Below, piece after piece: positions 5,617-61,120 of a stretch of DNA of 64,000 bases. This stretch comes from Bigelowiella natans CCMP2755 (Eukaryota > Protista > Cercozoa). The number at the start of each line of letters is the position of its first letter. Within the stretch, counting starts at the first letter, position 1. The DNA lies in the NCBI GenBank assembly GCA_000320545.1, contig ADNK01000149.1, positions 232,148-296,147 of the forward strand. The letters run 5' to 3'. A program made the position numbers and the translations under genes. The notes below the pieces were generated by a model, which saw only the letters and a list, made by a program, of their open reading frames with translations, did no database searches and was not told the origin of the DNA.

Positions 5617-6290
5617 CTTGCTAGCTTGCAATCGTATTGAGCTGGGCTGCTCTCCAGCTAGCCAGCTGCACGTGCGCTAGATGTACACACATAATCTTTC
5701 CAGCACTTGAGCTGCTGCACTGTTATTGGCGCATCGCAAAATGGCAGGATCGATCGCGATGAGCGCTAGCGCGTGCTGACTACTGCTGTTGTGTGCGAAT
5801 CGCATGCACCGCAACAACACATGACAATTGTTATTAGCACACGTGTCGTGACCTGTTTGGTGCATGCTAGCATGTGTGGACATGAAAAGAGCACACGTGC
5901 CTTTTTAGTGCACATGCTAGCATGAAGAATGGGCATGTGCATGTGTTTTTACGCGCTAGCGCGCCTACACGCACGTAGCTAGATAGCTAGCTAGCTAGGG
6001 ACTTATGAGTCCATGTGAGCACACAAACAACTAGATCATGCAAGCTAGCAAGCAACATGTCTAGCTAGCGCGCTAGATGTGATGATGAAAGTCAAAGTGA
6101 TCGCGTACGTGCTAGCGTGGCATGCTATGATCAAGCCAAGCGCATATCTAGATATGCTAGCTAGCTAGCTAGCATGACATTCAACAATCTAGCTAGCTAG
6201 CAATCTAGCAATGTCATTATCGTCAAGTATTATATATAGAGAAGCAAGCTAACATGATGACAGCAAACAATTTAGTCTAGCGTTCGCAGG
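5617..6290. other. Palindrome-dense RY-alternating intergenic tract (convergent spacer)
   Basis: catgctagcatg at 5863 and 5913, cgcgctagcgcg at 5952, gcatatctagatatgc at 6142-6157 and atgctagctagctagctagcat at 6154-6175. No coding frame. Confidence 0.9.
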
Positions 6291-6378
6291 AACGCAATCA
6301 TTATCAGAGAGCTTTATATTGGTGCTCACTACCCTTTTAAAAAAAAATCAAAAATCATTGGATAATGTTGAAGAAGGA

Positions 6379-9300
6379 TCACTTCCGGCTATGGTTGGAC
6401 GGGCTGCCGATGCCCCGCCTGGGCGTACGTATAGCATGCCTTGGGGTCGCTGCAGCAGACACTGTGAAACCTGTAGATGATGGTGACGATGAAGATGGTG
6501 ATGATGAACGATATGCAAGTTGCTTGTGTGTGTTTTTGAAAATCCAAGAATAATGAGACGAAAACCGAATGCTGCTACGTCCGGGCAGAGGGCATGAGAA
6601 CCTTCCTGTGTGTTGTTTCTTCTGGTGTGAGAAGCAGAGACGAGGTACTCGTTGTTGGAATGGCCGGTTTCAGTTACGATCCCTGATAAAGTTAACCAGA
6701 GAGGAAGGGGGGAGGAGAGAAAAGGATGGCAAAATGGAGGGTGAAGAACAACACTTGCCTGAACACCCCTTCCGTGAATGTGGAGAATTCATTGTCATGT
6801 TGTATAAGGGTGCTACTACTACCGCTTGAGATAACTGTTGAAAGATCAGGTCTCCAGTCCTGCATCATTAGTTGATTGATTGATGGATGGATTTGATGAT
6901 GTAGACCACAGCAACAACAACAACAACAACAACAACAACAACATTTGTTTTTCGCTACTATTACTACTACCACTATTACTAATACTCTCACCCCCTTATT
7001 TTCCCTTGCAGAAGTGGAAGCGCCTCCTCGCCGCAGGGGGAGGTTTTGGTGAATGCGATGGGGATGGAGGCTTCGGTAGATGCCTTTTGAATAATAAAAT
7101 AGATTAGATTTATAGTAGAAGAAGAAGAAGAAGAAGAAGAAGAAGAAGAACGACAAGAACAGAGACCGGGTTAGTACAGTTGCTTCTCTGTCTCCTCCTC
7201 TTCGTCCTTCTCTCTTCCACTTTCCTTTTCTCATGATTTCTCTTGATATTTTCTCTTTTTTTCTCCTTCCCTTTTCCTCTTCTTCTTCTTCTTCTACCCT
7301 TCTTCGCATCACAAACCGCGCTATTACCACTGCTACTACAACTACAACTACAACTACCTCCGTGTCGCATTTGTAGCGCCATAGAGATAGGACGAGTAGT
7401 TACCCCCGCTGCCAGCGCCCTTTGCTCGCTGCATGGATGGACGGCAATCAGTGGTAAAGAAAAGGAGGAGGAGGTGGAGGAGGAGGAGGAGAGAAAGTAG
7501 CAAGAGGAAGAACAAGATGGGTGGTGCGGCTAGGAATTAATGATGCTAGTGACGACGAATCTATCATGATCATAAATAGCAAACTAACACACACAACTAT
7601 TTACGGCGACACTCGATGAGAGGACTGGTTGTGTGCTTGTTTTGTGTCTCAGAAGCTAGGAGGAAATCGTATCCATCATCCTGTTGATCTACCATCACCT
7701 GCTGCTGTTGCTTTTGGGGCGGCATCGAGCGAGGGCGACGAAATTGGGAATGGCGATTCTGCTGCTGCTGGATCCTACTGATAATCGATGCAGTAGTTTC
7801 ATGTTCAGTGTGCACAAAAACTGTTCTTTACTTCTTCTTCTACTACTACTACTACTACTACTACTACTGCACTAATACCACTGCTACCACTACTCATATT
7901 CCTTCTTAGCATCGACATCATCTCTCGCATATCATACTTTCGTATTTGCTACCTGGCATTGATAGCAGCAGCATTCATACTTGTACCATCTCCGCTTTGA
8001 CCACGCCTAAGGACAGAATCGTTCATATATAAGATGATGATGTTCTATTCTTTTCATCATCATCAGTACACAGAATCTGGCAGCGCATTGGGAGAGGAGA
8101 ATTAGGAGACGACGAGTAGGAGGGAAATGGTGATAACTACTCTCAATCAATGCAATAACCTCGCCATAGGTGGCGGTCTCTGAATGGTGCTATCTCGCGG
8201 ATGATGCTGCAGAAGGAATAACAGAAGTAGGAGGAGTAGCACGAAGAAGAGGAAGAAGAAGGGGAGGAGGAGGAGGAGGAGTACTGAAGATAGTTGGCAG
8301 AATAACGATATAAGATTATATACATTACACAGTATACATAACAATCGGAGAGAAAGGTGTATCATCCTACAACTTACTACTACTTCTGGCAGACGCTGGT
8401 ACGCATTGTCCAAGCCAAACCCAGCTTCCCCATCACGATAGTGAAGGTTATTGTTGTTGTTGTTGTTGTTGTTGTTATTGTTATGAAGTCTGTAGTTATT
8501 GCGGGCCGCTGCTGCTGAATATGATTGACGGGAGTTCAAGAGAACAGAGGAGGGAGGGAGGGAGGGAGGGAGGAGGGGGAAACACTGATAAGAAAAAGAC
8601 GCGTCATCGTCTACAAATCTTCTCTAAGCGCGAGCGGGCATGAGAACGGAAGAGTGACGTTCCATAAGATCGCTTCCCCCTCCGCCTCCTCTGCCCCTCC
8701 TCTTCGCATTCTTATGTTTCTTCTCATCCGCCAACCTCGATAGCTTCAATGCAAAATTCTCATCTCACATCATCATCATCATCATCAGCATCATCATCAT
8801 TATCAATGCAAGGAGTATCATGTTGTCTTCTTCCATACCGTCGTCGGTGCAGCAGCACTGGAGGGAGATTCCACCTTCAGATCCACGCGTCTATATACCA
8901 TCATCATCGTCATCATCAATGTATTACTTCAGTCGGTAGAAAGGGGGGGGGGAATGATCACGTGAATGGCGTCATCAACGATAATTTCTGATAATACTGT
9001 ATATCCGTACTAATACTACTCTATATGTTAATTCGTCGCCTGCATACCTGGGAGAAGATGACGTGTGCATTGAATAACGCGATCGCGAGGAGAACAGCCA
9101 GCTTTTATGTGTGTATGTGTGTGTGTGTGTGTGTGTGTGTGTGTGTGTTTATCATGAGCAGCGTCAAAGCCCCCCACCAGTAACACACGTACGATAATGG
9201 ATTTGCAACAACAAAACACAGAGATCATCGAGATCAGTAGTTTTCATGATACAATTTAAAAAAAAAAAGAAGGTGATTGTGGGGATTCTAGTGATGAAGC

Positions 9301-59203: not shown

Positions 59204-60588
59204 ATGGTCTCCCCTCGGCTTTTGTTACCACTATTGTGTACCTGGCTGGCCCTCGCAGCTATAGAACGGGGAGGCTCGAAGTCCCTGGAGGTCAATGAAA
59301 GGGTGTCTTCAAGATCAAATGCCACTCAAGACGCACTAGTTGGATACTCAGCCGGTGACTTGATAGTGAGCCCAAAAGGGAAGAGTTTCTCAGCTGTAAC
59401 AATCTCGATTGCCATACAGGTAGAGCTACTTGGTGTTACTGAGCTAGTTAGCCAGGCATCTTACCTCAGTGTCACAATCTTTTATCCTCATTGTAATATC
59501 GCTCTCTCAGGTGATCAAAAATGAGAAAATGCCTGCAATAGACGACGCATCCATTGCAGTTCTAAAAGAAAACATCAAAGATCCTACAAGCTTTGTTGCT
59601 TGCCACGATACAGCAAACCAGCTGCTCCATATCATGGGAGAGGGTACAGTTGCAAAAACCGGGGGTAAAGGAAAGGAGTTGAACGTGGAGGCTTGCGATG
59701 CAGCGATTCAAGTCCTGGAATCAGGAGTCCCATCAGCTATCCAAATCACTGGGCGATCAATAGGTGCAGACGGCCATTCATTTGTCTTGATATTAAAGGA
59801 CAATCAAAAGGTATAAATATCAAGTGCAGCTAACTTACTCTGCGCAAATTAATTCAGATTTTGAACTGTTATATCGAATACCAATCATTCTTCAGGTCGA
59901 CGTGCTGGAAGCCTGGGCTGTAGCGGGCGGTCATCAGGCTGCTTCCCTGCCCGCCCTTCTTCGACAATGCAAGAAAAATATTCCTGTAGCAGATGCAATC
60001 CAAGCACTGACTGAGATGAAGTCTCCGGACACTAATGTACGAACCAGGGGCTATACTGCTTTAAGCACAGCCTATCCCACTGCAGTATACTACGAGCTGA
60101 ATGCAGATGAGTCGACTCACGCACCTGTAGGAGAAAGGATTATTGTAGTGCACTCACGAAAGCTTGCCCCAGCATCCCACATCGAAGAAAAAATGCTGAA
60201 ACGATGCGAACTTGCCTTGGAGTTAGAAGAAAAAGTTAAAGCTGCCAGCACATCTGATGTGCAGGCACAGCAAGAAAAGCTTCTCGACAAAAATATTCCT
60301 TGCAAACCATATTTTCATATAGAACACAGGTTGCAAGGAGAAAACGAAATTTGGGCTAAAAGGGTAGAATGGCTTACTTCTGGTATTCCAGAAGATCACG
60401 AGGACCGTGAGGACATGGTCGATGACTTGATGATGGAGGCTTGGATTTATGCCTCAGAAATGACAAGGCCTAGTCTAAGGAAAGACATGAGCCTGGACAA
60501 GTATTGCATTAAGAAAGCCGCAGAGTATATGAAAGATCAAGGTTATCCACAAAAGGGTAAATTATCGACAGATCTCACCCCCGAATGA
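59204..60588 (+). CDS. Predicted secreted 402-aa protein with a putative papain-like Cys-His-Glu triad
   Basis: Exons 59204-59419, 59511-59810 and 59896-60588 are all phase 0. Signal peptide MVSPRLLLPLLCTWLALA. Motifs FVACHDTANQLL (Cys codon 59601), DGHSFVLIL (His codon 59775) and VDVLEAW (Glu codon 59908). Confidence 0.8.
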
Positions 60589-60829
60589 CGCTGCTGTTGT
60601 TTTCCGTAACTTTTGTAACATCTATGTACAATGTGTTTAACAAGCGTTGATGGAACGAATGCAAAAGAACATGATGACATATGTAGTAACTAACACATTC
60701 TAACGTAGAACTCCATAGCATTTTATTCGTAACGAAAGTGAAGATTTTAAATGATCTCGTTGTGGAAAATAAAACACCGACTCTAAGCTATTTTATTTCA
60801 TCTCATGTTGCCGGACACGATTAGCCAGC

Positions 60830-61120
60830 TAAATACTGCAAAGCACTGCGTACGTACTGAGCAACGCATTTAGTGCATGGTGTCGGACAAATGCATAGCC
60901 AATGCGGTGTCCACGATTCCATTCAGCGTTGCCTGCACCAACGTGCACATGCGGCTATTTGACATCATACAATGCCTATTGTCACAACTAGACAAGAAAG
61001 TGGAAACATAAGTTTTCCTCTTATGTTCCATCGCCGCGCCACGTGTTGTATATTATGCTATGTATGTTTCACCTTCATCACTATGCTCTATCAAATCGTG
61101 GACCATGCATATGCAGCGAT
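60830..61120. other. Palindrome/RY tract (convergent spacer; weaker example)
   Basis: tgcgtacgtac, gtgcatgg, atgcatagc, acgtgcacatg, cgcgccacgtg and catgcatatgc. Confidence 0.55.

Follow-up and report, generated by a model that had tools for sequence, protein, structure and literature searches.

The stretch of DNA analysed here, referred to below as the window, comprises 64,000 nt of Bigelowiella natans CCMP2755 (contig ADNK01000149.1, positions 232,148 to 296,147); the coordinates given for its features are those of the window. The sequence is eukaryotic and intron-rich, with a G+C content of 44.9 %, and its GT-AG introns are heavily loaded with microsatellites. This fits the gene statistics published for B. 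natans, which give 8.8 exons (159 bp) and introns of 184 bp (PMC12730881). Nine tracts of intergenic DNA, to none of which a strand is assigned, are the subject of this analysis: tract 1 (5617-6290), tract 2 (14425-15150), tract 3 (27110-27640), tract 4 (34130-34620), tract 5 (37780-38340), tract 6 (42700-43560), tract 7 (51240-51760), tract 8 (56960-57520), and tract 9 (60830-61120). Clusters of CTAG, CATG, and TGCA, reported for these tracts by an initial annotation, are present in them, and the strings that it quoted were found, catgctagcatg at 5863, 5913, 43078, and 43329, cgcgctagcgcg at 5952, and a 22-mer at 6154. Many of the CTAGs stand between two exact copies of a 4-bp sequence, here written X4-CTAG-X4, and the tracts lie beyond the 3′ ends of genes. 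No match to Rfam models at gathering thresholds and no tRNA genes were found in the 64-kb window, and a Pfam search of 38 of its ORFs gave one solid match.

All nine tracts share a distinctive composition. Relative to expectation, GpC (1.53-2.19), CpA/TpG (1.3-1.9), and ApT (1.1-1.5) are favoured in every one of them, and CC/GG (0.2-0.7) and AA/TT (0.5-0.9) are avoided; the same dinucleotides are near 1 in the remaining window. Purines and pyrimidines alternate more often in the tracts (0.57-0.64) than elsewhere in the window (0.48), in agreement with the alternation claimed for them previously. CTAG is enriched 7.9-fold over the remaining window and 4-fold over shuffled tract sequence; GCTAGC is enriched 44-fold and GCATGC 22-fold. 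CATGCA occurs in all nine tracts, GCATGC in eight. The favoured dinucleotides CA, AT, TG, and GC are exactly the ones that make up (CATG)n, and (CTAG)n is made up of CT, TA, AG, and GC; the most enriched tract 4-mers are the four registers of (CATG)n and (CTAG)n, together with GCGC/CGCG and one-transition variants.

A first-order Markov scan of the whole window recovered all nine tracts and one other segment, a result that is partly circular because the training data of the model were these same tracts. Cores were placed at 5669-6227 in tract 1, at 14617-14731 and 15020-15131 in tract 2, at 34037-34590 for tract 4, and at 42735-43061 in tract 6; tract 9, the weakest, barely passes the scan. 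The other segment, at 18.1-18.3 kb, is an intronic (GTACGTGT)n minisatellite, the sole non-tract DNA to score as tract-like. About 14 tandem copies of this 8-bp unit, period-8 and purine/pyrimidine-alternating, fill 18140-18260, and the array follows directly after a GTAAGT donor and therefore lies within a plus-strand intron. With this exception, introns carry ordinary microsatellites and no tract-type DNA, as had been proposed.

The proposal that the tracts share a grammar without being copies of each other also holds. Besides microsatellites, the only similarity between tracts is one 60-bp stretch with 78 % identity and one 24-bp CTAG-type match. A single dispersed transposable-element family was rejected as the source of the tracts, which are not alignable to one another. 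The stretch of about 60 bp is common to tract 3 (27414-27469) and tract 6 (42874-42932), so at least one short dispersed repeat is present in these spacers; several TA-containing positions of the tract 3 copy read TG, CA, or GC in tract 6, and in the one haplotype available this homologous pair shows no clean 8-bp difference.

Within the shared composition, two grades of tract can be distinguished. The strong grade, tracts 1, 2, 4, 5, and 6, contains many CTAGs and has raised autocorrelation at lags of 4 and 8 nt (five of the nine tracts); the weak grade, tracts 3, 7, 8, and 9, has the composition only. For the repetition of 4-mers in the tracts, z is 12 at period 4 and 16.5 at period 8. Short CTAG or CATG arrays and structure of period 4 or 8 are also found in cryptically simple sequence and in tetranucleotide microsatellites. 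The tracts differ from these in that slippage does not yield X4-CTAG-X4 with arbitrary X4, four tracts are without periodicity, and the ordinary microsatellites of this genome are intronic and of other types. The chances are about even that the tracts are cryptically simple DNA made of self-complementary tetranucleotides, not selected palindromes or structure-forming elements.

The comparison of tract position with gene position was confined to secured gene ends; the region at 15-27 kb is of too low complexity for convergent junctions to be read. Five stop codons were used. On the minus strand, the stop at 27707 is the 3′ end of a single-exon gene that encodes a putative, GHL15-like glycoside hydrolase (27707-29137, with its 5′ end at 29137; product P0001, 476 aa). 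The other four are on the plus strand. The stop at 42627 is the secured 3′ end of the myo-inositol-1-phosphate (inositol-3-phosphate) synthase gene (39529-42627), which is multi-exon with microsatellite-containing GT-AG introns, and that at 56873 belongs to the P0211 gene (56292-56873), a single exon with a 193-aa annotated product and with both the 5′ and 3′ ends secured. The stops at 51107 and 60588 end a long-exon gene (47954-51107; three ORF exons of 440, 365, and 277 codons) and a gene that ends in a 263-codon ORF (59204-60588), the orientation of both being taken from ORF length alone.

Each of the five stops is followed, 60-240 bp on, by tract-type DNA, and the intervening interval contains an A-rich or AATAAA-like stretch. 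Tract 3 is bordered on one side by a plus-strand coiled-coil ORF ending near 27040 and on the other by the P0001 stop. Tract 6 begins about 70 bp past the synthase stop codon, tract 7 about 130 bp past the stop at 51107 and just beyond an AATAAA, tract 8 about 90 bp past the P0211 stop, and tract 9 about 240 bp past the stop at 60588. Measured over 400 bp of the tract-type DNA past the five stops, alternation is 0.58-0.67, GpC 1.45-2.26, and the density of palindromic 4-mers 37-85 per kb; upstream of five verified or probable starts, the values are 0.44-0.53, 0.62-1.06, and 12-20 per kb. The two groups (n = 5 vs 5) separate completely on all three measures. The tracts were thus correctly recognised in the initial annotation as a position-specific sequence class, with tract DNA after five of five secured stops and in none of the five regions upstream of starts. 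The other 13 tract flanks have inward-pointing ORFs that are candidate terminal exons, as judged by eye and by ORF length, and the longest-ORF test at tract flanks favoured the inward ORF in 11 of 15 comparisons. Polypyrimidine-tract strand bias and counts of A-runs at tract edges (nine flanks vs five) were too noisy for strand assignment. Codon log-odds scoring of ORFs and Viterbi exon chaining did not rebuild the inositol-phosphate synthase gene, and both were dropped.

This distribution introduces a serious rival explanation, in which selection maintains the tracts for a function in termination or as boundaries and the CTAG insertions are incidental. Such elements might be an extended downstream element for 3′-end processing that serves both convergent genes, or an array of GCTAGC/GCATGC-type sites for a dimeric protein. 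The onset of tract DNA right past the A-rich or AATAAA-like stretch after every secured stop, its absence upstream of starts and from introns, and the near-constant presence of CATGCA and GCATGC are all in keeping with this. So is the alternation in a compact contig from an unrelated marine picoeukaryote (ENA metagenome assembly), which carries the closest NCBI homologue of the window hydrolase gene: its four convergent spacers (3141-3288, 7621-7858, 11447-11915, and 17448-17654) all have values of 0.56-0.62, compared with 0.42-0.53 in its divergent and tandem spacers. The positional bias of that contig is milder, and none of its 25 CTAGs is a scar of the X4-CTAG-X4 type. Selection for such a function is, however, difficult to reconcile with tracts that have no conserved spacing, consensus, motif order, or sequence conservation between them, that range in strength from 27 CTAGs to one, and whose most regular feature, a duplication scar, is a mutational mark. 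We therefore consider this explanation unlikely. In position the tracts resemble bacterial REP/BIME sequences, which are short palindromic sequences concentrated beyond the 3′ ends of genes, often where two genes converge. REPs, however, all copy one conserved stem-loop consensus and owe their mobility to a dedicated transposase, whereas the tracts have neither a consensus nor a general excess of hairpins, and their host is a eukaryote.

The duplication scar itself was found by testing every 4-mer as the centre Y of X4-Y-X4. Apart from microsatellite and minisatellite units, CTAG is the sole enriched centre, with 28 of the 194 CTAGs in the window so flanked. Identical 4-mers are present on both sides of 27 of 77 tract CTAGs, compared with a mean of 0.095 in dinucleotide shuffles (maximum 2 in 1000) and of 3.8 when flanks are permuted among CTAG sites (maximum 11 in 5000). 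With CTAG arrays left out, 19 of 56 have identical flanks, where 1.0 would be expected. Outside the tracts, only one of 109 CTAGs is flanked in this way. In a further 15 tract CTAGs the flanks agree at three of four positions, as decayed copies would. The length of the repeat is fixed: direct repeats number 28 for flanks of 4 nt, two for 3 nt, and one for 5 nt.

Tract 1, the strongest, has 27 CTAGs, of which 13 are X4-CTAG-X4; the X4 of these events include CTTG (5617), CCAG (5654), CATG (5863 and 5913), CGCG (5952), CAAG (6041), CGTG (6108), ATAT (6144), and CAAT (6201). Other examples are CGTG-CTAG-CGTG in tract 2 (14601), ATTG-CTAG-ATTG-CTAG (34337) and AGTA-CTAG-AGTA (34588) in tract 4, events with CCAG, AGGT, and AGTT in tract 5, CATG-CTAG-CATG in tract 6 (43078 and 43329), which also contains (CG)n and (GA)n microsatellites, and ACAA-CTAG-ACAA in tract 9 (60984). 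Arrays of CTAG behave similarly, as three of eight stand between exact 4-bp direct repeats (CAAT, AGGG, and CTGC), the last as CTGC(CTAG)4CTGC in tract 5 (38174-38197), and a fourth between flanks matching at three of four positions. The nested form X4(CTAG)3X4-CTAG-X4 is present in two different tracts with different X4, as CAAT(CTAG)3CAAT-CTAG-CAAT in tract 1 (6185-6212) and as AGGG(CTAG)3AGGG-CTAG-AGGG in tract 2 (14422-14449).

Where X4 is not itself palindromic, the right flank equals the left flank 14 times and its reverse complement twice; in the 12-mers, therefore, X4 is directly duplicated on the two sides of CTAG. Their palindromic look comes only from the self-complementarity of CTAG and of the commonest targets (CATG, CGCG, and CTAG), the X4 that give palindromic 12-mers being CATG, CGCG, ATAT, and CTAG. 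The first base of X4 is A or C in 27 of 27 events. More generally, the base after a tract CTAG is C or A in 75 of 79 cases and the base before it G or T in 64 of 79, and CTAGs in the rest of the window have no such preference in their neighbours. From the first base of X4 and this neighbour bias, the target is dyad-symmetric, (A/C)NN(G/T). The 12-mers are thus the products of repeated micro-insertion of (CTAG)n, with n mostly 1, 3, or 4, within an exact 4-bp direct duplication. Together, the fixed length of the target duplication, the constancy of the remnant, and the symmetry of the target mark a staggered-cut insertion.

A number of other origins for the tracts and their scars were considered and rejected. 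Tandem duplication of 8 bp followed by decay is not supported, as a second CTAG is adjacent in only three of 19 events. Nor is a target duplication of 8 bp, of the hAT type, as the repeat spans 12 nt instead of 16. Had TpA hypermutation of (TA)n been sufficient, GC, AT, GT, and AC would be equal and there would be no CpG motifs, which is not seen. A cloning or linker artefact is at odds with events that have genomic target duplications and a position relative to genes.

Readings of the tracts as cruciform or Z-DNA torsion sinks, or as footprints of 5-methylcytosine deamination, were put forward in the initial annotation and are judged here to be very improbable. Its description of all nine tracts as packed with palindromes stands for four of them: compared with shuffles that preserve dinucleotides, tracts 1 and 6 have a clear and tracts 2 and 5 a moderate excess of 6-10-bp palindromes, with no excess in the other five, tract 3 among them, which also has no period-4 excess. 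The purine/pyrimidine alternation would suit a structural role, as would the single-strand DNA folding energy of tract 1 (z = -4.0 against 20 shuffles). Of the three tracts tested, however, the other two fold no better than their shuffles (z = +0.6 for tract 5 and -0.4 for tract 7), and the excess of direct over inverted repeats described above is contrary to a cruciform. For a torsion sink between converging polymerases, the sign of the supercoiling is also wrong, because under the twin-domain model positive supercoiling accumulates between convergent genes and both Z-DNA and cruciforms require negative supercoiling. As for methylation, CpG is not depleted in the tracts (observed/expected 0.75-1.29, against 0.84 in the remaining window), CTAG would not be expected from deamination of CCGG because the CpG is lost after the first deamination, and 4-bp flanking duplications are beyond what deamination can make.

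A mutational process acting on TpA has been described in this species. Mettrop et al. (bioRxiv 10.64898/2026.01.13.699255), who give a nuclear G+C content of 44.87 %, report TpA-to-TpG/CpA hypermutation of integrated viruses and transposon-like genes, with thresholds of TpA ≤ 0.43 and CpA+TpG ≥ 1.52; their preprint makes no mention of CTAG, palindromes, or 3′ spacers. In the window, a domain of about 1.4 kb (37680-39130, no strand assigned) that contains tract 5 and extends about 800 bp past it is nearly free of TpA, and outside CTAG its observed/expected value drops as low as 0 over 300 bp. In tract 5 and this domain, TpA is 0.46 overall and 0.07 outside CTAG, CpA/TpG is 1.8-1.9, and 12 of the 14 TpAs of tract 5 are inside CTAG. 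The domain looks like the published hypermutation. Past tract 5 it has ORFs of 95-139 codons on both strands; no known protein was matched by a Pfam search with two of these or by a protein search with one, 38341-38757(-). The domain adjoins ordinary genes and is not part of a viral island.

Outside CTAG, TpA observed/expected is 0.07 in tract 5, 0.40 in tract 2, and 0.54 in tract 1, and 0.8-1.1 in the other tracts, so that the CTAG-rich tracts are those poorest in other TpA. The likeness to hypermutated DNA, in which TpA is almost erased and CA/TG raised, is thus strongest at 37680-39130 and partial in tracts 1 and 2. It does not extend to the five to six tracts with near-normal TpA, and hypermutation cannot make CTAG or target duplications. 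Among the published hypermutations, TAG/CTA contexts make up about 22 of 231 when the table is counted by hand (bioRxiv 10.64898/2026.01.13.699255), so a following G alone does not protect TpA. The tract CTAGs are therefore either young, having arisen later than the hypermutation, or protected as a tetranucleotide. Given their abundance relative to shuffles and to the rest of the window, they have not merely been spared.

The best explanation, held with moderate confidence, is that the tracts are cryptically simple intergenic DNA to which (CTAG)n insertion scars with 4-bp target duplications and a variable degree of TpA hypermutation have been added. A DDE transposase or integrase making staggered cuts would leave a strict 4-bp duplication around a constant remnant, either as the excision footprint of a cut-and-paste element with CT...AG ends or through abortive integration, and insertion into an earlier CTAG would give (CTAG)3. 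Hypermutation of TpA to TpG/CpA would form a second layer, removing other TpA and raising CA/TG in some tracts while the CTAGs stay. The location at 3′ ends could arise if, in a compact genome with shared divergent promoters, no other intergenic DNA escapes both transcription and promoter constraint; alternatively, the inserting agent may prefer termination zones. After Tc1/mariner excision, both target copies remain with a few terminal bases of the element, and the scars resemble such transposon footprints in the direct target duplication of fixed length, the short constant remnant, and the dyad-symmetric target preference. They differ in the combination of a 4-bp duplication with a CTAG or CTAG-array remnant, in the absence of a donor element from the window, and in their density, up to about 20 per kb, and confinement to 3′ spacers. 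We know of no transposon family that combines a 4-bp duplication with a CTAG or CTAG-array remnant.

Several observations weigh against this explanation. When 4-bp duplications bracketing inverted ends were sought in the 64-kb window as evidence of an intact element, nothing non-trivial was found. Nested insertion alone does not reach (CTAG)4, for which slippage would be needed. Insertion scars cannot account for the whole class, because the tracts at 27110, 51240, 56960, and 60830 have few CTAGs and no periodicity, and they leave the base composition, GpC above all, without explanation. Lack of constraint is not sufficient to explain the location, because introns are also weakly constrained and carry microsatellites without tract DNA, and a near-universal presence at 3′ ends is also what would be expected of a functional element. 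Lastly, there is no CTAG insertion among the 21 de novo indels of mutation-accumulation lines (bioRxiv 10.64898/2026.01.13.699255), so the process is not seen operating today, although low-complexity DNA may have lain outside the callable genome. In favour of the explanation, 17 of the 21 new indels in these lines are intergenic, roughly 9-fold the genic rate (bioRxiv 10.64898/2026.01.13.699255). Several of the new indels are insertions ending in ACA or AACA (GACA, CAACA, ACA, ...GTAACA, ...GCAACA, and CATTACA), and one multinucleotide change in the same table is TGGC to AACA (bioRxiv 10.64898/2026.01.13.699255); the recurrence of this ending may point to insertions that are copied from a template into intergenic DNA.

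Other sources of a 4-bp duplication must also be considered. The cuts made by topoisomerase II are staggered by 4 bp and fall preferentially in alternating purine/pyrimidine sequence, and the trapped enzyme leaves duplications of 2-4 bp. The tracts could accordingly carry a signature of torsional stress, in which the enzyme is recruited by positive supercoiling between convergent genes and its aborted breaks are filled in, duplicating 4 bp and over time producing period-4 DNA. Their location between convergent genes, where the enzyme would be expected to act, their alternation, and the excess of tandem 4-bp repeats at period 4, such as CATGCATG at five places, fit such a process. Fill-in only copies existing sequence, however, and would not supply the constant CTAG between the copies; in addition, plain X4X4 duplicates ignore the (A/C)NN(G/T) rule of the CTAG events. 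This origin is considered improbable. A decidedly improbable source is the insertion, by target-primed reverse transcription, of extremely 5′-truncated non-LTR retrotransposons of which only a (CTAG)n 3′ tail remains. Target-primed insertions usually give duplications of variable length, whereas the duplication here is strictly 4 bp, and no such element was seen in the 64-kb window. The variable number of CTAG units between duplications and the absence of any element body would agree with tail-only insertion, and endonuclease-reverse-transcriptase domains are reported among the TpA-depleted coding sequences of B. natans (bioRxiv 10.64898/2026.01.13.699255).

It is also conceivable, if rather unlikely, that a domesticated transposase or integrase deposits CTAG with its 4-bp duplication specifically in termination zones, that the TpA of CTAG is shielded from the TpA-directed hypermutation, for example by adenine methylation, and that the tracts serve as written marks of gene boundaries, or of 'self' where foreign DNA is mutated. 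Taken together, the evidence points to an undescribed mutational or mobile-element process and not to a folded DNA signal.

Further features of the window and of related contigs were recorded alongside the tracts. Homologues of the hydrolase at 27707-29137 (-) carry PF14885, and most are bacterial or lie on picoeukaryote contigs, with 41-55 % identity; the gene has a single exon in an otherwise intron-rich region and is a candidate horizontally or endosymbiotically acquired gene. Its closest homologue (55 % identity) was found in Logan run SRR27444842, on a contig where the 865 bp 3′ of the homologue (3404-4268) have GpC at 1.88 and CpG at 1.62 times expectation and contain the strings gcgctagctagc and gcatgcagc. 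The composition of 3′ DNA may be common to the window species and this relative. In the inositol-phosphate synthase gene, at about 41075-41300, one exon seemingly ends ...GGACAG|GCACGG, which suggests a GC-AG or otherwise non-canonical intron. At 1-1722 (-), a 574-codon ORF runs off the start of the window; its N-terminal part is a coiled coil, after which come about five tandem protein repeats of some 50 residues, ending ...SMPKFLSQESKLEMSSSPSTIESPNS....

A literature search for such tracts, or for scars of CTAG with a duplication, in B. natans or any other eukaryote found no description. The nearest analogues are transposon footprints and, in position alone, the REP elements of bacteria; here insertion scars and cryptically simple DNA are joined with a distribution that is unusual in being position-specific. 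The tracts are real, and we consider it about as likely as not that they form a lineage-specific class of intergenic DNA. If the pattern holds genome-wide, B. natans would have a class of intergenic DNA that is tied to gene 3′ ends and built largely by one stereotyped 8-bp insertion, which no described mobile element or repair pathway explains, and which would provide a handle on the activity of a staggered-cut enzyme. It also raises the question of why CTAG should be so abundant, at 4 times its level in shuffles and 8 times that in the rest of the window, in just those places where other TpA has been erased. For annotation, tract composition would be a cheap predictor of the 3′ ends and orientation of genes in this genome.

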